A DNA stretch of 64,000 nt. It comes from Podarcis bocagei. Its lineage: Eukaryota. Shown here piece by piece: positions 4,309 to 64,000 of this stretch. The DNA is taken from NCBI GenBank assembly GCA_964188305.1, contig OZ076896.1; one strand, 5' to 3'. The number at the start of each line of letters is the position of its first letter. Position 1 is the stretch's first letter. Position numbers and translations under genes: made by a program. The notes under the pieces are model-generated. The model worked only from the letters and a program-made list of their open reading frames with translations, did no database searches and was not told where the DNA came from.

Positions 4309-6995
4309 AGAGGCAGCCCTCATCCCACTCACGGGTCATTCACTCCTTAGGTGCAGTCCTCAGACACTGTCAATCACCCCAAAAGGAGCTTCAGAGGGTC
4401 TCTAAGCTGCCCTATCATGATCTCCTTCCCACACCTTCTTGCCACAAAAGGGGGTCAAATATCAGTTTAGACCTTCTTTGCCCCACTGCCGAGAATAAGC
4501 TCATGCAAAATCCTCTGCAGGCCCCCCAAGAATATTTCATTTCCAGTTTCCAATGGGCAGATGTCATCAGCACTGTATAGTTCAACCCTATCATGCCACA
4601 CTTCAGGATTATGTAAAGCACGAAGAAAACAGAATTAAAAATGAAATACAGGATCTGCTGGTTCACTTTTTTATGTGCCCTGTTTATTGCTCTTGGGTCC
4701 CCCTCACAACTACACTTGGTCAGGCAAAATATCAGATCACAATAACAGAACTTCTGGCCAATGCTGCTTAAGAACCTGAAAGTGATGACCAGCCTGTAAA
4801 TTCAGGGCCTTGGCCTTGCCTTCCATGTGTTTTAAATGTCTGGTGTGTATGGCTTTATTTTAAGGACAGTAGTTAAAGGCTCAGTATGTTATCTCAGGCA
4901 GCAGGGGCTGGAGGAAAGGGAGATAATCGGGTTAGAGGATGCTGTCCGGTTGCCAGTGCTGAAGATTCATCTACCAGTTTAGTCAGTTCATATACAAAGA
5001 ATGGGAGCGACATCTTGTCCTTCACCCTAGGAGGTGAAACAGGCCCTGCCTATACTAGAGTGTGCAGGAAAAAAAGAATTATTCTGGATCTGGGGCCAAT
5101 TCTTCCACATAATAGCACAGCTAGAAATAGCTCTCCCATGAGTGAAAGAGACTTTCCAACAGTGGAAACAGCACCTTTGGGCCCAACCCAAACAGCAAAT
5201 GCTGTTCGCTCAAAGTCCAAATAGCAGATCTGGCTTCAGAGCAGATATCCCAGTCCAAATCATAAACTCAGGTGCTAAATCAGGACTAGGAGAAAAGCAC
5301 TGCTTCTTACCTCTTCTTGGGTGCCTTTGCTATTGCCACTTCTGATTTAGGGATGCGCCAGTCACCATCCGGATGCCAGCCTAAGGTCAGGAGACATTGT
5401 AGTAATCTGAATGTATCCAAATGCCCATCAGCCTGCTAAAGGCAAATGACTAAAACACTCTGAATGGTGAGCAATATAATCTCTTACTCATGTGGCTGCT
5501 TTGCTATGAGCCCTACGCCAACTTTTTGTCTATTTTCATTACTGTGAACTAATCCCTTTCAAAGTAATTGCTCTGTTCTCCATTAGGGAGAGACGTGCCA
5601 GCAACGGAGCTCAACAATTAACACTGGCATTAAACAAAAAAACCCAAAAACTTCAAACAGTCTGAAGTTCAGAACTAGGAGAACTCTTGGGCCTTTGTGA
5701 TAAAGAAGATTGTCATAGTCTACTTATTGTCCAATAAAGTATTCTGTAAAGAAGAGGAATTCTGGCACAGTGAAGCGTTGAGATGCTAGAAGGCAACATA
5801 GCAAATGAAACAGATTTACTTGAAAGCAGATCTTGGGATATTTCAATGGAGCTGGCTCCCAAGAAAATATGCTTGGTATCAGAGCCTTAGTTGAATAGTT
5901 AAGTAACTATGGAAGGTAATCATTATTTAGTGATATTCTTTGGCAGTGGAGTAGAAAATCCTACATTTTATCAGCATCTCTTTCTTTCCCATACCTAGGG
6001 TATGAAACTGAGTCTTAACTATAGCCAAAAAGAAATGTCTGTAGACTCTTATATTAAATTATATAAATAACAGAATTAATATCAGCTATTTGTTGCAATG
6101 TTGCAATTTGTTGTTTAGAAAATGTGTTTCAGAAAGAACACAGTCTGGTAATCTTCAAAGATCACTTTATGTTTGTAATAACAAAGGCATTGTAATGTAT
6201 GCATTTATAATAAGCTTGTGTATTTTACAATATAATTTGTGGTTGTAATAATATTCAGTATGCTGTTCAGCAAGTTGGAAGGCATATACGGAAATGGAAA
6301 CTGTCTCATACTGAATAACTTCTGGTTTTTCTGAAATAATCCTCAAGTGTTGGGTGTTTGAAATCATTTCTTCAGATATCTGTCTTTCTGTGAGTGCCTA
6401 TCAAAGGTGTTGACACAGTATCACCCAGTAATCCAGAGGCTTATCATCAAATTCCACACAAAACTCATTTCAGTGATGTGGCAACAGTTTGAAGGTCATA
6501 ATAATCTCTGAAGGTCAATTTCCTGATGCATGGTTCAGAGCTTTTGCTACACGCAGGGGTGAACTTGGCGTTTTGCTGCAGACTACTTCAATCAGGAGCT
6601 AACTTGTGAATAATCAAGAAGTACTTCACAAATACTTCTAAGCTCCACTTTCCTAATCCAAAGGTGTGATAGGGTGCAGCCAACCATGGTAATTCAACTT
6701 GGAACAAGTTATTATCAGATAGAAAACACGATGGGAGGCTGAAAGGTGCTGGGCTCTTTAAAGACTTCAAATGCTCTCACCAATAGAATATGCACTTTTC
6801 TGTTTGTCCCTTTCCCATAAATGCTTTTCTGTGGCACAGCTGAGTAGCAAGTTCAAAATCCAGTAAGCAAATTAGGGGGTGGAAAGCAGCACTCGGCAAA
6901 ACTATCCTATAGTTGTTTCATTATCACAGACAATCGGGTGACATGGTGGAGGGGAGTTCGCACACATAGCAAAAGCATGCACACGCAAGCTAATT

Positions 6996-7000
<5 letters not shown>

Positions 7001-7070
<70 letters not shown>
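7001..7070. repeat. compound (CT)n(CA)n microsatellite
   Basis: directly visible. Confidence 0.98.
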
Positions 7071-7072
<2 letters not shown>

Positions 7073-7289
7073 CCAGCCCAGAGTTTAAATAAGACACATG
7101 ACATCAGAATTGGGTTGAATAAGGCCACAACATTATTGACTACAGACGTAAACTGGTTTGGGCAAAGGCATTGAGTATGTATCCGGTATCAAGGAACCTG
7201 TCTGTTGGTTGAGCAGTAAGGTGGGTCGACCCTGACATACGTCAAGTGGAACAATCTCAACAGGGTCACCACTCAGAAGGTTTTATGGT

Positions 7290-7580
7290 CCATCAGTCCC
7301 TATATGGCACTTTCTTGATCTCCTGCGCTCAGGCAAAAGATATAGAAGCATGATTAGTTGCACCGACAGGGTAAAGAACAGCTTCTATCCGTGGGCTGTG
7401 TTAGGCTGCTGAATGAAAAGATAACAACAGGGCAACTGACTTTCGGGTTTGGTGGGTGTGCGTCAGTAAACAAGGGGAATTAAGACTAAGAGAGCTGAGT
7501 GGGGGGTTCTCGTGTAATCTCACTGTATACAAGTTGTACAAGTGACAATAAAGTATTTCAATTCAATTTCAATTTCAATA
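7290..7580 (+). mobile_element. Rex1/Babar-clade LINE 3' fragment
   Basis: 7321 onward translates as LRSGKRYRSMISCTDRVKNSFYPWAV..RLLN, matching the Rex1-type C-terminal motif LPSGRRYRS..T.R.KNSF.P.A.RLLN; then AATAAA and a (TTCAAT)n tail; 5' boundary uncertain. Confidence 0.65.
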
Positions 7581-7699
7581 TGGACTTCCAGACAAAGCAA
7601 ATATTTCATTGACTCCTTTATCAGGCTACTCAATGTCTAATGATCCAACCCAATGCCTTATATCACCTCTGTGGGGCACAAGCTTGGGCAGCATATATG

Positions 7700-8330
7700 G
7701 AAGTTCTGGGCTGCCCAGACAACAAGACCCCACTCTCAGCCTTGGTGATGTGGTTCAAAGGAAAGGAAAGCAATACATTTGGCACTAGCTTGGCTTCAGG
7801 AATTTCCACAAGGAGGCGTACAAGATGCCATCCAACCATCTTAGGGACTCCTCTCTGGAATTTTCCAGGGTTTACTCCTTGGTCTTTTCTTCTCCTGAAG
7901 ATGTCCCACAAGGCATCAGGAACAGATTTTCCATCAGGGTTTGCTCCTGAAGGCTTCCTCACAAATGAGAGTAGCCACAAGGTGGTGGAGATTTAGGAAC
8001 AGAGCTCTCCATCTCCTAGATGGTTGACTTTCCCACGTTGACAAGCCCCATCTGCCCCTCATTTCTCACTACAGCATATGCAGAAACTGCCTTTTTGGCC
8101 ACTGGACTTATTATTAGCCTCATCCACTCAATCCGTCAGAGCCAGTTTCACATGCAGGGGAAGTTCCTACCTCACTGAGGGTTTGAGACCCATCAGAAAC
8201 CCTCACCTGGTTTAGCCAGTTGGTGGAAGTCGATTCCAGGCATGTGGCTACTATCGCATGCTGACAGCTTCTAGGAACCACAGGTGAGAGCTAAGTACAG
8301 AGGACCAAAGGTGGACAAACTAACATGGAA
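7700..8330 (-). mobile_element. probable RTE-clade LINE 5'-region fragment (degenerate)
   Basis: minus strand carries CATCTAGGAGATGG..., GGAGCAAACCCTGA..., GGAGTCCCTAAG motifs that resemble recalled RTE-1 5' regions; boundaries approximate. Confidence 0.4.
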
Positions 8331-44250: not shown

Positions 44251-46003
44251 TTTGCTAACACAAGCTGCCTTGCTATTTTGTTTTCAGTGCTGTTCCCTTT
44301 ACTAATATGATTTCTCTGTTGACAATATGTGTACCACTTTCCATTCCTGGCAGAGTGGCATTTTGTCCTTTAGGTTGCATTCAGTCATTAGTCTGTACAC
44401 TACCAAAAATGACTAATGCCAAATAACTGAATCCTGCCAACAATGTAAAACAGTGAATAATGTCGGATCATGCTGAGAAAAAGTAGTGTGTGGTCCACAA
44501 ATTCTCTGCTAGCTGAGCATGAACTGAATTCTAATGTGAACCGCAGGAGGTTTTACAAGTTTTATTTTTAATTGCTGTTCACTTGTCCTTATTAAAATTG
44601 CTTAATTAATGTGCCTCCAATACACTGACAATTGGAAGTCAGTAAGAAATGAATGCCATGTTTTGTTTTGTTTTTAAAGTGTTCCTTTCATTGCCATGGT
44701 AGTCAAACTTCATTTTGGAATCCAGCACACAAAATTACAGCTTTAACAGTGAATATTCCTGTTTAGAAAACACCCTAAAGTTAATGCTATAACCCTGAAT
44801 CGAAACATTCCTATTAAAGTTGATTGACCAGCACAGAATTTGTTTACGCAAGTTCTGATATACCAATTGGGAGCAAGGCAGATTTTTATTCATGTCTCTG
44901 AGGTCCAACACCAGCCACAGCATTGCCTTGCTTATATTGATAAATGTGACTGACATGGAGTTATGCTTCAAGGACAAAACTTATTATAATATGCTTGAGC
45001 AAAATACATAACGGCAAAACTGAAGGAGATATTTCCTTCTCACTGTTGATTTTCTGCCTAATACATGTATCGTTGTTGGGTGCGCTGTGTGTCTCGCGGT
45101 TGGGTTTACAACAATTCTGAACGAGGTTGCACTCCTCCTGACAGAGCAGGTGAGGAGTTTTGGGCACACTTCTGGTGTGTGTACATGGTTAAGAGATGCC
45201 CTTTTTCAACTGTGGCTAGTCTGATAGCTTTGTATTTTCCTGGCAAAAGCAGAGCTCGCCATGGCTATTCATGGTTTAGTGACCTCAAGATGAGATCCCT
45301 GCAACATATTCTCTATGGGCCTGCCATTGAAAAGCATCCAGTTAATGCAAAATCCAGTGGCCAGAATGTTGATGGGAACTAGGCATTTATCACACTAGTT
45401 TTATGTTACATGTGCATGCTGCCAATATGCTTCTGTGATCAACTGAGAGTGCTGCTGGTAACCATTAAATGGTCTTGGTACTGGTACCTTAACGACTGGT
45501 TTACTGCAATGTATTCCTTTTGACGCTTCCCTTGTGCTTAACTCAGAAGTGCATCAGGGTTGCTGACTGAACTATTCTGTTGATACTATGTATGATATAA
45601 CACCCCTGCACTGACTGCCAATATTAAGCCAGGTGCAATTCAAAGTTTCTCTATTAACATTTTAAACCCTAGACAACCTGAGACTAGCACACCCCATATA
45701 TTACAGCCTGGCAGCTGCATTGCTTAAAACAGTGCCACATACCACAGACATGCTTAGATTGTACTAGAAATTGTTATTTTAGGGTTTGGGCTTCAGCCCT
45801 TGTAAAGAAGTCCCACAGCCATGATGTTTAGGTGCCTACTGAAGACCTCATTGTTTAAAACTTTCCCTTCCAGTCATTTGTGGAAGGTTAATTATACATC
45901 TGTAGAAATGGTTTTATTGATTGAATGGTTGTAGGAATGCTTTTGTTTTTAGACTTTTTTTGGGGGGGGGGGTTATCTCATTTTTATCTTGTGCACCATT
46001 TTG

Positions 46004-47161
46004 TTTTTTGTTTTGTTTTTTATATACAGTGGTGCCCCGCAAGACGAATGCCTCGCAAGATGGAAAACCCGCTAGATGAAAGGGTTTTCCGTTTTTGAGC
46101 TGCTTCGCAAGACGATTTTCCCTATGGGCTTGCTTTGCAAGACGAAAACGTCTTGCGAGTGTTCCGATTTTTTTCCGCTTCCCCCCCCTTTTTCTAAGCC
46201 GCTAAGCCGCTAATAGCCTTTTAGCCGCTAATCCGCTAAGCCTTTAATAGCCGCTAAACCGCTAATAGCACTAATCCGCTAAGCCGCTAATAGAGTTGCT
46301 TCGCAAGACGAAAAAACTGCTAGACGAAGAGACTCGTGGAACGGATTAATTTCGTCTTGCGAGGCACCACTGTATAATTTTTATTTATTTTCCATTTAAT
46401 ATTGCACATTCACATCATCATTATCCACTATACCACCTTGGCTCTTTACAGCCTATCAGCTTCCTTCCCTCCTGCCTCATGGCTTTCGAAATTAACCTTT
46501 ATATCATTGCAATTTATACGTTTTCCAGTTCTAATCACATTCATTGCAGAATGGCTCAAAATTTAAATAGATATACAAAGGTAGAAAAATTCTCATTACA
46601 AGTCTTCAGACAACCCTGCTAGTGATGTTAATTGTTTACAATAATCTTTCATATATTGTATGAATTTGCTCCAATCCTTTTGGAATACTTGATCATGCTG
46701 GTTCCAGATTTTTCCTGTCAGCTTCGCCAGTTCTGCAAAGTCCATCATCTTCATCTGCCACTCTTCTTTCATTGGTACTTCTTGTTGTTTCCATTTTTGG
46801 GCTAAAAGGATTCTTGCCGCAGTTGTTGCATACGTGAACAGTCTTTTATCCTCTCTTGGTATCTTTTCAACCACTATACCCAGTAAAAAGGCTTCTGGTT
46901 TTTTGACAAAAGTATTTTTAAACATTTTCTTTGACTCATTATATATCATTTCCCAGAAAGTCTTTACCTCTTTACATGTCCACCACATATGATAGAAAAT
47001 ACCTTCCTTTTCTTTACATTTCCAACACTCATTAGTTTTTGTTCTATACATTTTTACCAATTTCGATGGTGTTAAATACCACCTATACATCATTTTCATA
47101 ACATTTTTTTTAAGTGCACTGCATGCTGTGAAGTTAATACCTTCTTTCCATAGGCTTTTCC
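46004..47161 (-). mobile_element. L1-clade LINE 5'-truncated copy (ORF2 C-terminal CCHC region plus 3'UTR), with a MITE inside its polyA tail
   Basis: ORF 46596-47099 CWKCKEKEGIFYHMWWTC (zf-RVT-type knuckle) ...PEAFLLG...YATTAARILLAQKWK; T-rich tail; 18-bp TSD ATCTTGTGCACCATTTTG (45986-46003, 47162-47179). Confidence 0.92.
46027..46372 (+). mobile_element. pogo/Tigger-type MITE, family B
   Basis: TA|CAGTGGTGCCCCGCAAGACGAA...TTCGTCTTGCGAGGCACCACTG|TA; internal CGCAAGACG and CCGCTAA repeats. Confidence 0.9.
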
Positions 47162-47195
47162 ATCTTGTGCACCATTTTGATGGCTTTTGGCTATA

Positions 47196-53563: not shown

Positions 53564-54021
53564 CAGGCATGTCCTAGGGTTTCAGATGTGTCCCAGGTCG
53601 ACCGCCACCTCCCAGATCGATTCCCGCCCCAACCCCTCAAAAACTCAACAACTTTGGCTCCCTAAAGAAAGCTCAACAATGAACAACTCTAGTCCATCCT
53701 CCAATGACAATGGGTAGATCACTGGCAGTTTTTTTATATATATACAGTGGTACCTCGGGTTACATACACTTTAGGTTACATACGCTTCAGGTTACAGACT
53801 CCGCTAACCCAGAAATAGTACCTCGGGTTAAGAACTTTGCTTCAGGATGAGAACAGAAATCGTGCTCCAGCAGCGCGGCGGCAGCAGGAGGCCCCATTAG
53901 CTAAAGTGGTGCTTCAGCTTAAGAACAGTTTCAGGTTAAGAACAGACCTCCGGAACGAATTAAGTATTTAACCCGAGGTACCATGAGTAGATTGCAGTCT
54001 CTTGGAAGTTGGACGTCCCTG
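53564..54021. mobile_element. hAT-type MITE
   Basis: CAGGCATGTCC ... GGACGTCCCTG TIRs; 8-bp TSD AGCTAGAT/AGCTACAT (1 mismatch). Confidence 0.7.
53745..53985. mobile_element. MITE family A nested in the hAT MITE
   Basis: TA|CAGTGGTACCTCGGGTTA...TAACCCGAGGTACCA; right terminus damaged. Confidence 0.88.
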
Positions 54022-54461
54022 AGCTACATGAACCAATGTGTCTAACCTACTATAAAGGAATTTCCTTTTTTTTTAAATTTTTTATTGGTTTTTCCACTTT
54101 TATAAAGACAAAACACACACAAAAAAGACACAAGAAAAGAACATGTATAAATTCCGAAAATCCTAGTTTCCTAACCCTATTCCCAGACTTCCCCCACCCC
54201 CCCTCGTGCATCCCAATTCCCAAGATTGTGTCAGCAATTTGGTGTTTCTCCTCTTAACCATCTTATTACCTTTTTTATAAACAAAATATAGATTTTTCCT
54301 AAGTTGGACTCAAGTTCTCTTCCGTCGATTTCTCATTTTGTCTTAATTAAAAGTCATATTAACTAAACCTAAAGGTCTTGAGTGTTTTTAAGATTCTCTT
54401 CTTCCCTCCCTCCCATCCCCGGTTTTTGTCCCTTCCCAATACATATCCAGAATAGCAGTTC

Positions 54462-55064
54462 TTAGCCTGGGTTCCTCACGTCCGAGGCTTTCAAGTCTCT
54501 TTCAGTCCCTCTCCGCCGGTCTTGTTGGTAGTCCTTTATGTCGGTCATCAAATCTGGAAAGAGTTCTTTCGCCATCAAACCATATTCTCTTCCCACAAGG
54601 ACATTTGAAAGCCACTGCTGAAAAATTTCCACAAATCCTGCATCTTCAAAGTCAAAGTCAAAATGGAGGCCCCAATCATATTTCTTTGTTTTAAGTTCCT
54701 GTGTTCCATAGACTCCCGGGGCCTCCTCCTTCATCTTCTTCATCTTTCGCAGACTTGTGGTAGATATAATCCAAAAATCTCCTTGCTTGTATTCCACAGA
54801 TGTCGGCTTTTGGTTATTACTTCCCAGCTTTACTTTCTCTTTTTCTTGTTTAGTCTCTTCCACCTCTTCAGATATCAGTTCCCATTCAGCTGTGGATTCT
54901 TTCTCATTCAGGTCCTCAATACGTACAGCAGAGCTGCCTGTTCCAGAAGTCAAGGTCATAAGTTGTTTATTCATAGCTAAGCTCTGCTCTTGTAGAATTC
55001 CCACCAATTGAAACATCCTTTCGATTTCCACTAGTAACTTTCCATCCACAGCCATTGTATCCAT
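54462..55064 (-). CDS. 200-aa ORF of the non-autonomous retroelement (possibly ORF1p-derived, coiled-coil-like N-terminus)
   Basis: intact ATG-to-stop ORF in the element's sense orientation, A-rich coding strand, heptad-like and E/K-rich N-terminal half; homology unverified. Confidence 0.5.
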   Translation of the reverse strand: MDTMAVDGKLLVEIERMFQLVGILQEQSLAMNKQLMTLTSGTGSSAVRIEDLNEKESTAEWELISEEVEETKQEKEKVKLGSNNQKPTSVEYKQGDFWIISTTSLRKMKKMKEEAPGVYGTQELKTKKYDWGLHFDFDFEDAGFVEIFQQWLSNVLVGREYGLMAKELFPDLMTDIKDYQQDRRRGTERDLKASDVRNPG

Positions 55065-55823
55065 TGTAGTTTCACAGAATTCCCCCTAGGGGGAATCTGG
55101 TTACTTATTAGTCTTTTCTCCAACAATCCTTTAACTTATTTTTATTACTTTGTTTCCAACAATCTTGGTTCAATTGTAGCTCATCTTAGTCCAGAGGGAT
55201 CTTAAATAGCAATTTTTCCACTCTAAACTGCCCGCTTGACAGCTTTGACAGCTGTCAAACTCCGCAGCTCTTACACAGGCACAGAGACAGGACGCTCCCG
55301 GGCCCGGGAGGGGGGGTTGTTTAAAGCAAAAAGAAGGCTTCCCAGTCTCCACTCTCCAGCTCAAAATTTCTTTTAACTAAATCTTGGAAGTTAGTGTCCT
55401 TTTTAACTCACCCCTCCAAGGGTAGGCTCTCCAGCTTAGCACTTTGTCGTTGCTTAGATCATCTGCAAGGGGGGGGGGTGCGGACTTCCTTTTAGCACAC
55501 CCCCCGGTCGTCTCCAATTCAGGGTAATGTTTTTAAAATCCAATTCCGTCTTACTCACGGGTTCTTTCTTTTCAGTCCAAATTTCAAGGAAGGAAGTCAG
55601 CGCTCTCTGGTCATGGCTCGCGGCTTCACTCCACCGAGGTAGCGATCGACTCTCAGTGCCACGCCGCCCTCCGTATCCTCTCCGCAGCCTTTAAAAAGGC
55701 TCTTCGTGGATCGGGGGGGCGCTTAAGGCACCCGCCGAGTCTTCAGTCCGCAGGCTTCCGCGCCTGCAGTTTTTAAGGGTCCCCGCGTCGCCGGCGCGGC
55801 AAAGACCCGTCCTCGGTTGAGCC

Positions 55824-55884
55824 GATTCCCTCCGCAGCTCGGAGGGAATCCGCCATTTCCAAATCGCGCCAACCCGGAAGTCCC
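55824..55884 (-). promoter_or_regulatory. putative internal Pol II promoter 5' module (ETS plus YY1-like motifs, hairpin)
   Basis: CCGGAAGT at 55874-55881, CGCCATTT at 55851-55858, perfect 11-bp stem 55824-55834/55840-55850. Confidence 0.5.
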
Positions 55885-58800
55885 ACTATAAAGGAATTTC
55901 CTAGGCTCCTAGCATTAGGGAAAAGCCAAGGGACCCTTCACACATGGAGAAAGTCACTTCCACAATATGTGGTGCCATGCTGTTGGAATACAGATATGAA
56001 TAGAATTTGGATATGAGCAAGGCCAATCATATGGGTCTTTATTATGAACACTTTCCCCTGACATACGCACTTTTGCACAGATTTTTGTTCACAATTTTTG
56101 TTCACATTACCAAATGCATCAACAAAGTGAAAATCTCAAAAGAAAATGGCATTTTGTGGGGAGTGCAAATTAAGCAAGTTTGCATTAAAATGCAAAGTGA
56201 ACCAAAGTTCTCTCCTATCCATACCTTCAGTTTTTGGGACTGCATATCTTAGAGCACAAATGACTATGGTCAGGTCTTATACATCAGTGTTATCTGTAAA
56301 GCTATTGGCTAAATGATAATGATAAAACGGTATGTTTGATCTAAAAAATATTTACCAACTTTTTAAAGCAGCATTAAATTTCTAATTTAAATATATTTAG
56401 GATTTGTGATTTTCAGGCCACTGCATTAACATCAATTTAAACTTATTTTGATTGTGAATTGTTGGAACCTGAATTTTACCTCTGAACAAATACAGGTACT
56501 GACCTAACAGGTCATTACAGGTTTTAGCTCTGCAACTCTGTAAGTGCTGACTCTAGAGTAATATCGCCAAAATCAAGGGTGTGACCAAAAAGAACAATAT
56601 TTTGCAATTCAAGCATAGATGGATAGCTGCATTACGATTAGGTATGGAACTAGAACTCAGTTTAATCAAGGATGACAGAATATAAATGTTCATTGGAATG
56701 ACTGTTTTCTCAACAGAATTTTTATTATGCATCCCTTTTATGTAGATAAGTCAAAACAATTTATTGCTTAGCTGACATACTTGAACTATTTTTGTTTTTT
56801 AAAAAAACAAAAACCCAAGACATGGCCCAATGACAATTTTACAACTCTTGTTGAACGTTATGCCCCAAAATTAAATCAAGAATGAATGTTAAGTGTCAGA
56901 GCATCTGTTTGCTTTATACATCTCAAATAACCTGCCATATAAACAGATAGTTTGATTAAAGCTCTCACTGTTGGATGTGTCAAAATGTTTATTCCCCGAA
57001 CCGTGCTCTTCCAATATTTCTGATCTGATATGTAGCCATCAATCAACAAACTCATAAAATTGTCAATAGTGTAGCAGGGCTTAAAATATTGAACAACAAG
57101 ATCTGCCCTTGCCCTTCATTTGTCTTAATTTATATGAGCCTCTATTTTGGTGGGAGATGTTTTCATCACTATGTTTTTAAAAAGGACATGTGCAATACAT
57201 GTGCCATACAATGCCAATCTTGTTTCTATTCTCTTGTAAGTATGCCAGCAATGGGCAAAGAAAAGGCAGGTGTTGAACAGGTGCTTCCCATCTCCCATCC
57301 TGGATAGTTGCTTCGAAATCTCTCTCCCCATCATCCCTGAAATTCTGCTGACAAAATTGCCACTATAGACTTTATAACTTTCCTTAGTGCTATCCATTGT
57401 CGCCACAGTAATCTGTACTTAGTCTAACAGTGTATTAATGGAGACCATTCATGTCAAACAATATTGTTTAAGCTCGTAATTTTGCATAATTCTAATTCTT
57501 GCTCGCTGGCTAAATAATGAAGTTTATTGGGCGCCTTTATTAATTAAAGACATCTTTATTTTGAGTCTCAGATTCTAGCATGTGTTTGTGTGATGTCAGA
57601 AGAGGTTAATGTGTCGCCCATTAAGGTTAATGATGTGGAACATGTTGGGAGGACCTTTGTGGAAAAAAGGATGAATAAAATGCAGGTAAGTACAACACTG
57701 TGATTAATTAAGAGGTTTTGTGAGAATAATGACTTGTCCCACTCCCACACCAGTACGATAGTAAGAAAAACTTCAGTTTCTGCAGTTCTGAAGGACAGTA
57801 TTCTTAACTTAGGGACAGAGAGTTCTTGAACCATTTTTATTGGTTTGAATGTATGAACCAATGGAAAGAAAGGTTCCATACTTTCAGTGGTGTAGTGCAG
57901 CAGGAATGTAAAGGAGCACAGATCCAGTACTTATCACACCAGGTGTAAAACATAGTGCCGGAGTGGTACTATTTGCCAGTGTTGTAAGCTTGCAGGGAGA
58001 GGACTGAAGGACAGGTCTGGCCTGGTACTTTATCTGTTAGTCAGGTAGGCTTTGCAGCAACAATGACTGGCCCAAGGTCCACCCAGTTTGGCAGTGCAAA
58101 GGGACAGCTTATTTTCAATCTTTGTCCTAATGATCCCTAAAGTTCTTTTCACACTTGTTACACACTACACTGATGCTTTTATTGAGATATTCAGCATAAC
58201 TCAAGATTCTGTATCTTTCTTTGTAGGACTGCATCAGACCCCTATCAGTGTATACATGTCATTAGAACAGTTTGCCCAAAGTGTTTGCCTTTACACTTAA
58301 ACAGGTTTTGCAATTTGTTCTTCATCTGCCGTCTATGGAGAGATCCTTTTGAAGCTCTTCACAATCTGCTTTAAAACCAACCAAACAACCAGCCCCAAAT
58401 TATGTAAGCACATTTCCACAATGTGTCTGCTCTCTACTTATGATACATTGAGATGTACCTCGGTTGCTTTTCTAGAAGACAGAATTGGGAGGCAGTTTTT
58501 ATGGCATGATGGAGACCCTTTGTTCCCATCCAGTTCTGCGAACCACTGAAAACTGCCACATGGATTGATGGGACAAATGAAAAATCAGCAGGGCTTTGTG
58601 TCATGTGGCGTGCAGGGCTTGGATATGTGCTAGAAATATGTCAGTGGACTTTCCAGCTTGCCATATGGGTGCACCCTTATTAAAGAAGTGAGGAACTGAA
58701 CACAACACACATTTGCTGGGCACGGTTTGAATGAGAGATGTACCCCAACTTCAGCTTCATATTTTGCTATTCCCATATAAAAAAAAATGGGAAATGTTTT

Positions 58801-59501: not shown

Positions 59502-62290
59502 TCCTTCTAATACTGAACTTCAGTGCTTTGGATACCCTTAGTTTGGCAAGGAAATGGGAACACTAAAAAATAAATAAAAAATCTCACCATGCGTGAAGAA
59601 GCGTATTAGTTTGTGAATTAAAATAAATATGTATTTCTTTTCTTCTTTTTTAAAAAAAGTGCCCTAACAAGAAGCTGTGCTCAGTGGCTTTGGATGTTGA
59701 AGATATCTACAGGAAAAAGAAAACGTAAATGGGATGGAGGAGTAGAGGGTTACTTGAACTTCTAACCCTAGCATCTTACAATTACTGAGGCATAGAGATA
59801 AGGGTCAGATAGGAATTCTGCCTTACTAATCTACTTCGGAGGAGTAAAGTATTATATGGCACTATACAGGGAAAGGAAATGGTCCTGTAGAAACAGGACA
59901 AGCCATCACTTAATTTTTTCAATGAAACTAAAACATAGTTTCATTGAAAAATTTAAGTGATGGCTTGTTCTGTTTCTACACAACCATTTCCTTTCCATGT
60001 ATAATGCCATATAATCACAGAAATGAAAGCCCTGATGATGGAGACGGGAGCTGGAAGACAGAGGTGTCTGGCATCAGAAGAGAGCTAATTCTTCTTCTGA
60101 GCTTTGGCAAGGAAGAACACATGCTTAGCCCAGACAAATTTCTCATTCTTCCACAGGAAGAATGCTCCATTTCCATTCTCCCTTTGCCACTTCCTCCTTT
60201 ATGTCCAACTTCTGCAACCAAGGAAAGGTTGGGAATCCAATTGTGATTCTCCACACGCACCTGAGTTTTACATTCCTACCTCTGCTTGAGCCTGGGCCAC
60301 AGTCCTTGAGCACCTGCTAGTGATGCCATTTCTTGGTGTTAGACCACTGGTGAGGAGCACTGCAAGGAACAGTGAACAAACAGCTGGCTAATAGTGGAAA
60401 ACAGTGACTCTCATATGCAAGTCTTTGCAAAGAAAGAGACACCCGTTACATCCTTTGTTGATAATGTACACTGTGCATATTGCTTCGACAGGGTGGAAAA
60501 ACACTTTTGAAATTTTTTCTTCCTGGTCAACCTGAAATTAGTATTAGGGACTTGCAACATTGGCTCCCTCACCTGATATTCATTGCAGAAGCAAATTAAT
60601 CAATTGACTCTAATATAGTTCACAGAGCCTTAATCACCTCCCTGCAGTTACCCTTACTAATGGCAAGGTGACAGTAATTAGTTATTGATGGCAATCTTTG
60701 ATATAAACAACATGGATACTAATCCTATTGAAATTGATACCTACATTTCCCTAGGCGCTAAGAGCTCACATTACAGACATGATGAATGAACAGAAGATAA
60801 AAGCATTTTTTTAAAATAATAAAAAAGCAAGAGATTCACACCTGCCAGAATAACAGGTAGCGGAAAAGGGGAAAAGCTCACTCATCATAAAGACCAGAGG
60901 GCAGGCTATCTATCTGGGAATTTTTCCATAACTGTTGTGGTTTCCCGGCATTTTTCATGCATTCTGCATTTCACAGATTATTGAACACATGTTATTAAAC
61001 AACTATATCAGGCATCTACTTTGGCAAAGCAGCAATAGTACTGGTGTTGGATGTGTGCAGTCCCAGGTAGAAATCCATGCTTTCAATATATGGGACTAGA
61101 AGGCTCATAATGGTAAGAAAAAGAGTTTGTTCTTCCTGGACTCATATAATAATGCCCCATAGCCCTGCCTGGTCACTAATATTTTTTTCTGCGCTACAGT
61201 TGGCAAAAACTCATCATGATAAGGACCTTTTTGTTGTTGAGCTCACTTCCTGAAAGACTCTTCTCTCTGGAAAAAAAAAGTACTGTGTTGACAGTTATGT
61301 GGTTTGGCATTTGCTAAAATTGTTTTTGTTTGTGCCAGCCTGTCATTTTATTGTTTTAGTTATTTTTGCCTGATGCAAAGAAGTTGCTGGGTTAATTTTA
61401 TTTTTAATGATAATTTTAAAAAGACATTATTTGTCAACTGCCTTGGGGTTGTTATATGACAGCTGCTTTAAAAATACTTTAAATAGACAAAATGTTGTTT
61501 TACTAGGTAGCTAACAAATTTGGCTTTGTTGTTTGCCGTTCAGTTTGTTTCAAAATAAAAGAAACTTTTTTTGATGTGTCAGCAACTGCAGTTGCCACCA
61601 ACACTAGTTATACTCAAACCAGAACAGCTATCTACCATGGCTGACCCTACCATGGGCAAGGGAGGCCTTGTGGATGGTGCCACTGATGGTAGGGCAAGCA
61701 AGCTTGCTGGCTGGCTGGTGGTGACCCATGACAGGGCTTTTTCACTGGTGGCTCCCTGTATGTGAAATGCCCTCCCTAGTGTGGTGTGTATGTCATTACT
61801 GATTTTCAAGAGAATTTTTTTAATGTTCCTGTTTCCCTAGGCATTTGATAACTGCAAGATGCCAGTCACTGAGATAATGACAACAACAACTGCTTTTATA
61901 AGTGAACTCACCCTTTTCATATGGCGGAACTGCAGGACGGAGGAGGCTTCACTGGGGCCCTGACGAGGGAATCAAACTGGAGACTTCCGGGTTGGCGCCT
62001 CTGGCAATGGCAGATTTCCTCCGATCGGGAGGAATCCGCTCCGTGGAAAACAGGGTCTGAACCGCCACGGCGAGGTGGAGACCCATCAGAAACCACAGGC
62101 GGGAGAAGCCTGTGGACGTGGGATTCGGCCGGCACCTTTGCGCCCCCCCCTACTCGCAGGGAAACCCGATTTCGGGGCTCCGGAGTGATGTGGGGTGAGC
62201 GGCGCGGTACCTTGAATCGACTGCTTATTTCACTGAGTGAAGCCGCATTGCTGTTGCCGGAGAGCGCTGACTTTTTCCTGTGGACAATTG

Positions 62291-62919
62291 TTTTTTTTTT
62301 AAATAATTTTTTATTGCTTTTTTTCCAAGGTCAGAAAAGATCGTCAACAACACAACAAAAGCGTTTTTACAGAAAAAAGAAGAAGTTATAAAAGAAAGTT
62401 CACTTTTCCAGATCTATTTTCATAGTCAACTGGACTTCCCCAGATCTTCCATCCCCTGCTTTCTTTACAATAGAAATAAACAGCAAATTGATACCTTATT
62501 TTATGTGTTTTTGTACTTTCATTTAGTTATATAATCTGTAATTTATACTTTTCAAAATCATAACTTAATTTCCATCATTTATAAATCTCAATGCTGAAGC
62601 ATGTTTTTCCCAGAGACTTAGCAAATTCTCAACATTCATATAACTTATAATGTTTTTGTAAATAGTCCTTAAATTTTTTCCAATCCTCTTCCACTGCCTC
62701 TTCTCCCAGATCTCGGATTCTGCCGGTCATTTCGGCTAATTCCATGTAGTCCATCAGCTGCGAATGCCACTCTTCCAGCGTGGGCAACTCCTGTGCCTTC
62801 CAATGTTTAGCTATAAGGATTCTTGCTGCTGTAGTAGCATATAAAAAGAAAGTTCTATCTTTCTTTGACACTCTCTGGCCCACAATGCCCAGGAGGAAGG
62901 CCTCTGGTTTCTTATGGAA
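62291..62919 (-). mobile_element. L1-clade LINE short 3' fragment
   Basis: ORF 62629-62883 FLYATTAARILIAKHWK...EEW...MDYMELAEMTG, homologous to 46596-47099; polyA tail; 17-bp TSD TTTCCTGTGGACAATTG (62274-62290, 62920-62936). Confidence 0.92.
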
Positions 62920-63560
62920 TTTCCTGTGGACAATTGGAGCTTAAATAACTGTTCGTGAGTAGAACGGAAAATTGGAATAAGAAATTTCTTTTAATTTGGC
63001 ACTGAAGCAGGAAGGTCTAAACAGGAAGTCTGCCTTCTGCTTTTTGTAAATAGATTGAAGCAAAGACACGGCAAGCTAGAGCTTAGAAAATCATTTGTAA
63101 AGGATCAATTTTCATCATTTAAAAATTACTGAACCCCCCTTGGAAGCAGGAGAAGAGGGGGGAACTTTTTCTGGACTGATTAAACTTGTAGAAGACAAGC
63201 AAAGAAAAGTAATTCTCCTCCGTCCTGAACCTGGTAGCAGGGTGTCAGGACAGACGTCTTCGGGAAGTTCATTGACTATATACAAACGTCTTTGACAGAT
63301 AATTAAAAGAAGAGAAACATATTGATTCCATTGTTCCCCTTCACATCTAAAAGGAACAAAATATTGACAAAATATCTGAAAAAGGAAACTTTGTTGTTAG
63401 ATTTGCTTTTTTAAAAAAGAGAGAGAGAGAGATGGATGGATACAAATAGAAGCTTTTTCCCCTAGAGGGAGCTTGTGAAACTGTTATTAAATTCGAACTG
63501 GGGAGCTTTGCAGCTGCAATACATTAAGATCGTGGGAACAGACTCTGACCTTGCATAACA

Positions 63561-63914
63561 ATGTATTCAGAGGCTCTGGTGCGTGCTTTCTGCAAGACAA
63601 GTGCTTTATTGGAACAGTTACATGAGAAGACGGATTTGATGACTGTTGCGATTAGAAATTTTGGACAGGTAGTGGGTATCTATATAGAGCCCACCCAGGA
63701 ATCAACTCAGGAGTGTGCTCTGACAGATCAGATGAGGGAGGAGGCTGTTGTTGCACCTCGGGTGGCAGAGATGGAGGAAGCTGTGGCCCAGCAGGAACAT
63801 GAGTTGTTGGATCTGACAAATGAACTTGGAAAAAGCCAGATTTGGAGAGACAGAGTTTTGTTTGGCTTGGAGATGGGGGGCTGGATAGACCCCCCCTATG
63901 CAGGGATGTTTTGA
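63561..63914 (+). CDS. 117-aa ORF of the second non-autonomous element (acidic, coiled-coil-like)
   Basis: ATG ORF just downstream of the conserved TTCCCCTAG block, positionally equivalent to 54462-55064; may be truncated. Confidence 0.35.
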   Translation: MYSEALVRAFCKTSALLEQLHEKTDLMTVAIRNFGQVVGIYIEPTQESTQECALTDQMREEAVVAPRVAEMEEAVAQQEHELLDLTNELGKSQIWRDRVLFGLEMGGWIDPPYAGMF

Positions 63915-64000
63915 CTTTCCAAGTCTGGCAATGGGCCGTGAGGAGTTTGGGGTTGTGGGGGTCCTCAACTCTGGAAGGACCGTGAAACATGCTTTTAAAT

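Follow-up and report, generated by a model that had tools for sequence, protein, structure and literature searches.

The 1.8-kb retroposon described here, found in a 64,000-nucleotide stretch of Podarcis bocagei DNA (the window), belongs to a family found in lacertid lizards that is discrete, present in multiple copies, devoid of ORF2 and marked by the insertion hallmarks of L1 elements. We consider it best explained, with a probability of about 80%, as one copy of a lacertid family of poly(A) retroposons that derive from L1 and are non-autonomous; the family would combine an L1-type promoter with a protein of ~200 amino acids and be copied in trans by the ORF2p of resident L1 elements. Most of the non-autonomous partners known for L1 come from mammals: Alu and SVA are without a protein of their own, and HAL1 codes for ORF1p. 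The original prediction, made from the letters of the window, had placed the retroposon beside the last of these, as a non-autonomous family with its own 5'UTR, a single ORF perhaps derived from ORF1p and a poly(A) tail. The family is multi-copy and its ORF is preserved, and so the two outcomes that the prediction itself had named as fatal, a single-copy structure and an ORF lost among copies, both fall away; the proposed descent of the protein from ORF1p has fared less well.

Anatomy of the element and the L1 character of its 5' end

The retroposon runs on the minus strand, with its 5' end at 55884 and its 3' end at 54067, and is 1,818 bp long (Table 1). It is flanked by the 18-mer ACTATAAAGGAATTTCCT, which has two exact occurrences in the window, both of them at the borders of the element, with the match stopping at both sides. 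Within these borders, every item of the anatomy that had been claimed is present: the 18-bp duplication, an AATAAA (54086-54081) placed 6 nt ahead of a tail of 8-9 A residues (54074-54067), a ~820-nt 5'UTR with a CpG-rich start (GC 61-67% and 32 CpG in the first 300 nt, then 0-4 CpG per 100 nt further on) and the 200-aa ORF. The retroposon is a complete and probably young copy. The absence of APE and RT coding capacity was also confirmed, with the 200-aa ORF as the sole sizeable one (the next longest on the sense strand has 64 aa) and no Pfam domain found in the retroposon; a total of 1.8 kb cannot hold both APE and RT, and no endonuclease or reverse transcriptase is encoded. The nick deduced from the duplication, a single site, is TCCT/AG, pyrimidines followed by purines, which is a loose match to TTTT/AA, the consensus site of the L1 endonuclease. 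Just outside the retroposon, at 53915-53960, lies the motif GAACAGTTTCAGGTTAAGAACAG, the first 17 nt of which also open the 3' flank of an unrelated copy in another sample (L009, 1368-1384); the motif probably belongs to a common interspersed repeat.

Table 1. Coordinates of the retroposon, its parts and related elements in the window.
Feature	Position	Strand	Basis or remark
Target-site duplication, poly(A)-end copy	54049..54066	.	Exact 18-mer
Target-site duplication, 5'-end copy	55885..55902	.	Exact 18-mer
Whole retroposon	54067..55884	-	Bounded by the duplications; aligns end to end with the P. lilfordi copy L011
5'UTR, 820 nt	55065..55884	-	Upstream of the 200-aa ORF
5' terminus motifs: ACTTCCGG (ETS-type), 55881-55874; AATGGCGG (YY1-type), 55857-55850	55850..55881	-	Kept in families A and B, the L010 type and L1
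L1-derived promoter part of the 5'UTR, CpG-rich (element positions 5-352)	55533..55880	-	Match to the 5'UTR of the L012 L1
Splice-donor-like GTGAGTA	55552..55558	-	Same relative position (322-330) in the A, B and L1 5'UTRs
Splice-acceptor-like pyrimidine run and CTAG/G (slash marks the putative cut)	55084..55093	-	Kept at a site shortly ahead of the ORF in A, B and L1
ORF, 200 aa, intact	54462..55064	-	Relatives with the same N- and C-termini; dN/dS
3'UTR, 395 nt: G-rich block, T/G-rich block, AATAAA, A tail	54067..54461	-	Junction and 3' end common to L001, L003, L006, L008, L009 and L011
Family B, second diverged member, running past the window end	61979..64000	+	5'UTR match to the L012 L1 and to the retroposon
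5'-truncated L1 3' fragment nested in family B	62291..62920	-	ORF2 C-terminus 79% identical to P. lilfordi L1

The origin of the 5' end was revealed by comparison with a full-length L1 of Podarcis lilfordi (L012), which was reached starting from an L1 endonuclease fragment and consists of a 5'UTR (5934-6880), a 370-aa ORF1 (6881-7993) and then the EN, RT and C-terminal parts; another L1 locus (L007) is without a 5' end. Element positions 5-352 align with L012 5938-6288 at 73.8% identity over 355 nt (E 6e-48), and no other non-coding part of the family is as well conserved as this segment (84-89%). Comparable matches to the L012 5'UTR are found in a P. lilfordi copy of family B (477 nt, 77%), in the L010 type (420 nt, 73%) and in the window copy of family B, whose 5' 450 nt are 76% identical to the L1 and 69% identical to the retroposon. 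Homology to L1 thus ends ~350 nt into the 5'UTR in the retroposon family and ~450-480 nt into it in family B. The extreme terminus is also held in common, with CTTCCGGGTTGG and then AATGGCGGA opening families A and B as well as the L1, and with the L010 contig beginning just past the terminus. In Anolis, the conserved 5' terminus of clade 1 L1 elements is GACTTCCGGTG-N8-ATGGCG, and the 5'UTRs of lizard L1s are long, with the first ~120 bp the most conserved (Boissinot & Sookdeo 2016, PMC5381506); the terminus of the retroposon fits this consensus apart from a longer spacer. Judged by these alignments, the promoter end of the retroposon family is the promoter end of L1, and the reading of the family as an L1 parasite is supported, since its first ~350 nt are L1-homologous and carry the published lizard L1 terminus motif.

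Directly after the YY1-type motif there is a 28-nt near-perfect palindrome (55851-55824, minus strand; element positions 34-61), which is kept in families A and B and has a shorter counterpart in L1. Its fold is a hairpin of 11 bp, with a z of -3.0 for the first 85 nt. An RNA hairpin was considered for this segment and set aside, its sequence being conserved yet free of compensatory changes, and the palindrome may therefore equally be a site acting at the DNA level.

The 3'UTR had been said to end much like that of the L1 fragment at 62291. The resemblance is real, since local alignment scores 46 where shuffled sequences reach 22.4 +/- 2.7 (maximum 31), but it is short and of low complexity, extending over 30 nt at 87% identity (E 9e-5) when compared with the L1 3' end at 62291-62920. 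A longer match, of 105 nt at 73%, links the copy L008 with another L1 3' end, and an nhmmer search on the L012 3'UTR gave an E of 2e-4 with high compositional bias. The family and the L1 3'UTRs have a common layout, in which a G-rich block is followed by a T/G-rich block and then AATAAA.

The encoded protein and its relation to ORF1p

A word search with the 200-aa ORF retrieved six proteins of 182-201 aa with 58-78% identity to it, one annotated in P. lilfordi and the others contained in eight ERR runs as assembled by Logan. More distant members were reached when 1.84 billion representatives were searched exhaustively with an HMM, which returned ten clusters only, all of 129-215 aa. The resulting 16-21 relatives, spanning the same range of lengths, have a common start and stop at identities down to 26%, the family-wide start codon being the second ATG of the 200-aa ORF, at 55055. 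All members carry the N-terminal consensus MAADGKL..EIERMF.LVG.LQEQ and the C-terminal consensus KDYQQNRRRGTERDLRASDVRNPG followed by the stop, around a middle part that is variable and contains indels, and the stop position and C-terminal motif are retained even at 26-30% identity. At the very C-terminus (54462-54500, minus strand), every family member ends in RASD(V/L/I)R.PG and a stop. A 2A-like 'NPG' recoding signal was considered at this position and rejected: the motif is one residue short of the D(V/I)ExNPG spacing, its N is not conserved (N/D/S/L) and the stop stands where the P would be expected.

What is this protein? The strongest rival account makes the family a true HAL1 analogue, in which the 200-aa ORF is a truncated and very fast-evolving ORF1p, with a coiled coil and the remnant of an RRM, that still works as ORF1p. 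The ORF does occupy the ORF1 position behind an L1 5'UTR, and its start, MA.DGKL, recalls the MADGRGKL of L1 ORF1p; however, the score of a nucleotide alignment between the two ORF starts was matched by 62 of 500 shuffles, and blastn and tblastn searches of the retroposon against the L012 L1 were silent beyond the 5'UTR, although the UTR itself is still 74% identical. At the profile level, hhalign gave the family a 3% probability against L012 ORF1p, and the all-database HMM search supplied no relative above 215 aa. In favour of the rival account, the family HMM scored 5.1 bits on the coiled coil of L012 ORF1p in hmmsearch, with only 2 of 300 shuffles scoring higher; the score is not significant.

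Searches of Pfam with the ORF and 16 relatives returned nothing relevant and no Transposase_22, and sequence and profile searches of the PDB with the ORF family likewise returned nothing relevant. These negatives carry no weight against descent from ORF1p, because the genuine L012 ORF1p, used as a control, is also missed, obtaining no Transposase_22 or PDB L1 ORF1p match and only coiled-coil noise. There appears to be a gap in Pfam coverage of squamate ORF1p, and because of it both proteins are left as 'hypothetical' in lizard genome annotation. The top-scoring entries in a feature search of the ESM Atlas, at 0.87, were unrelated fungal clusters.

Structure prediction and composition bear on the same question. 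Two AlphaFold models, built from alignments of 16 and 21 sequences, have mean pLDDT values of 46.7 and 42.3 and predict, with modest confidence, an N-terminal helix with a heptad-like pattern (residues 4-41 and 3-53); a helix of ~40-50 residues would be in keeping with an ORF1p coiled coil. No strands of an RRM or CTD are predicted in either model, a result whose weight is limited by the low confidence (pLDDT <50) after the first helix. A pI of 4.9 (4.5-6.4 in most members) makes the protein acidic, whereas L012 ORF1p has a pI of 8.4, a difference that counts against the ORF1p model. The one sequence cue offered by the original prediction, a likeness of MAKELFPDLM to the IIQENFPNL of mammalian ORF1p, fails because the FP is private to the window copy, with LR or FR in its place in other members. 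Descent from ORF1p is thus not borne out by the profile, nucleotide, structural or charge comparisons, and we regard it as unlikely, if still a serious contender; on the comparisons made here, the protein is not demonstrably an ORF1p homologue.

A bolder reading, less likely than not and only slightly more probable than descent from ORF1p, is that the protein is an orphan, not derived from ORF1p but born de novo or captured, which has been carried under selection by its L1-derived vehicle through lacertid evolution. It would then probably help the parasite RNA to reach L1 ORF2p or L1 particles, or else to evade silencing by the host.

Whatever its ancestry, the ORF is under purifying selection. 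The Nei-Gojobori dN/dS, as a mean over pairs of eight copies (a set from which the L010-type copy was excluded), is 0.35, against 0.86 and 0.69 in the other two frames. By region, dN/dS is 0.25 in the N-terminal 43 codons, 0.41 in the middle and 0.25 in the C-terminal 30 codons, and dS is about equal in the three (0.70, 0.68 and 0.62), so that the conservation of the ends acts on the protein and not on the nucleotides. With length, start and stop also kept, the expectation that the ORF would be preserved across copies was upheld. Upstream, the 799 nt before the acceptor-like motif hold four ATG triplets where ~12 would be expected, a depletion that fits translation of the ORF by scanning.

These data also weigh against an incidental ORF, in which the family would be a non-coding L1-dependent retroposon with a frame open by chance or through ascertainment. 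The intact copies were indeed retrieved via a protein database, and their intactness is to that extent subject to ascertainment bias, but the contrast between frames is free of it; the unreduced dS of the conserved ends, the survival of the stop and C-terminal motif in distant members and the scarcity of upstream ATG all speak the same way, making a chance ORF improbable. A case for it comes from family B, the reading frame of which is split in both species seen, in the window copy and in a P. lilfordi copy (L002, 2506-4148). A 117-aa ORF stops at the same place in the two; after this stop, the P. lilfordi copy carries on with the conserved C-terminal motif in the +1 frame. The family B lineage may spread without an intact ORF or may use frameshifting and, given that its frame is split in two species, an intact ORF may be dispensable in some lineages.

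Copies, lineages and a candidate intron

The prediction of a non-autonomous multi-copy family, rather than a single-copy structure, holds. Six further copies (L001, L003, L006, L008, L009 and L011) lie at distinct insertion sites and share the ORF-to-3'UTR junction and the 3' end; in all but the last, the junction was followed to the same AATAAA and poly(A), beyond which the flanks are unrelated. Together with the window element there are thus seven copies with at least six different 3' flanks, two of them full-length with duplications. The second full-length copy, L011 from P. lilfordi, is 78.6% identical over element positions 4-1818 and has a duplication of its own, of 14 bp with one mismatch. 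The duplication and poly(A) hallmarks of the window element recur in L011, L008, L009 and L006, and duplications in the family measure 14-18 bp.

A single genome harbours several deeply diverged lineages side by side, namely family A, family B and the L010 type. At L002 4023-4149, in P. lilfordi, a family B copy breaks off ~60 nt past its stop and is joined directly to a family A copy at the exact 5' end of the latter, which is itself truncated inside the ORF end; this junction could be a nested or a chimeric insertion. In the window, the L1 fragment nested in family B has a 16-bp duplication (62275-62290 and 62921-62936) and a poly(A) tail, which shows that L1 has been active in this genome and that its insertions bear the hallmarks seen in the retroposon. 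The other 5'-truncated L1 3' fragment in the window lies at 46635-47162. Downstream of it, at 46000-46400 on the minus strand, are short repeats of the GCGGCTTAGCGG type with inverted arms of the CGTCTTGCGA type on their flanks; this block, which adjoins the 3' end of the L1, represents a different repeat.

The 5'UTRs also have in common a pair of splice-site-like motifs, located at 6263 and 6773 in L012 and at 2827 and 3353 in L002 as well as in the retroposon (Table 1). The interval between them, 471-531 nt in length, diverges faster than its flanks, and looks from its sequence like a conserved candidate 5'UTR intron. Among the copies seen none is spliced, the interval from donor to acceptor being kept in every one.

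This last observation stands against the view that the copies are processed retrocopies of a host gene and no transposon family at all. Such an origin would account for the mRNA-like look of the retroposon, with its CpG-rich 5' end, one ORF, 3'UTR, AATAAA, poly(A) and duplication, but the terminus and first ~350 nt come from an autonomous L1, and the presence of an L1 promoter end in the family removes the host-gene reading; the coexistence of lineages A, B and the L010 type within one genome is a further argument against it, and we rate it as highly improbable. A one-off internal deletion of an ordinary L1, which the L1-like ends and nothing more would favour, is already refuted, because seven copies at different sites, from at least two assemblies and eight sequencing samples, share the same junctions.

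A proposed life cycle and its place among L1-dependent elements

The preferred reading, a non-autonomous L1-derived retroposon copied in trans, suggests the following cycle. Transcription would start from the internal promoter terminus as in lizard clade 1 L1 elements, driven by the ETS-type and YY1-type motifs within a CpG-rich first ~330 nt, and the RNA would be polyadenylated after its own AATAAA. Its translation would yield the ~200-aa protein, which starts at the N-terminus with an amphipathic helix, has a middle that is variable and probably disordered, and closes with the conserved C-terminal tail. A resident L1 would then supply, in trans, the ORF2p that nicks the target (TCCT/AG here) and primes reverse transcription on the poly(A) tail, leaving an A tail and a duplication such as the 18 bp seen here. 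The data show the anatomy, the multiplicity of copies, the L1 ancestry of the 5' end and the selection on the ORF; mobilisation by L1 ORF2p in trans is an inference, as is a role for the protein in the propagation of its own element, where it may serve as a functional stand-in for ORF1p. In that role the protein might associate with itself via the helix, bind its own RNA or L1 particles, or do something else. Weighing against the preferred reading are the short, low-complexity likeness of the 3' end to L1 3'UTRs, the loose fit of the nick to TTTT/AA, the retrieval of the intact copies through a protein database, the split frame of family B and the acidity of the protein, which is unexpected in an RNA chaperone.

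Among known systems, the nearest is mammalian HAL1 (half-L1), a non-autonomous L1 derivative that encodes only ORF1p and arose several times (Smit 1999; Bao & Jurka 2010, as summarised in PMC5753468). Both measure ~2 kb, retain the 5' end of L1, carry their one ORF where ORF1 would lie, finish in a 3'UTR and poly(A) without any ORF2, and form long-lived lineages of their own. They differ in host, here a lacertid lizard, and in product: HAL1 encodes a recognisable ORF1p, whereas the lizard protein is acidic, without significant ORF1p similarity and without a predicted RRM or CTD. The term 'HAL1-like' therefore stands for architecture and lifestyle, while membership, for want of ORF1p similarity, is not established; since the protein does not qualify as an ORF1p as far as this could be assessed, the lizard family is a counterpart of HAL1 and not a member. 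In the research literature, as distinct from the repeat catalogues Dfam and Repbase, our search found no description of HAL1-like elements in squamates.

With lizard clade 1 L1 elements (the Anolis L1_AC families) and the L012 L1, the family shares the 5' terminus motifs, a long 5'UTR with a CpG-rich start and a poly(A) 3' end, together with the GTGAGTA and CTAG/G motifs, but it lacks their ORF1p, EN and RT. SVA, other composite L1-dependent retroposons and processed pseudogenes resemble it in being Pol II-type polyadenylated RNAs inserted by L1 target priming with duplications; unlike it, they have no conserved and selected protein of their own, and processed pseudogenes have no promoter.

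The lizard family has thus kept the promoter and insertion mode of L1 alongside a small, selected protein that is not recognisably ORF1p, in lineages that have diverged to 26-30% identity. If that protein is an orphan, the family would be a hyperparasite of L1 that codes for a protein, a type for which mammals offer no described example. If it is needed for mobility, the family would offer a compact system for learning what a parasite RNA requires to capture ORF2p in trans, and would show how far a protein in the ORF1 position can stray from the RRM/CTD design.
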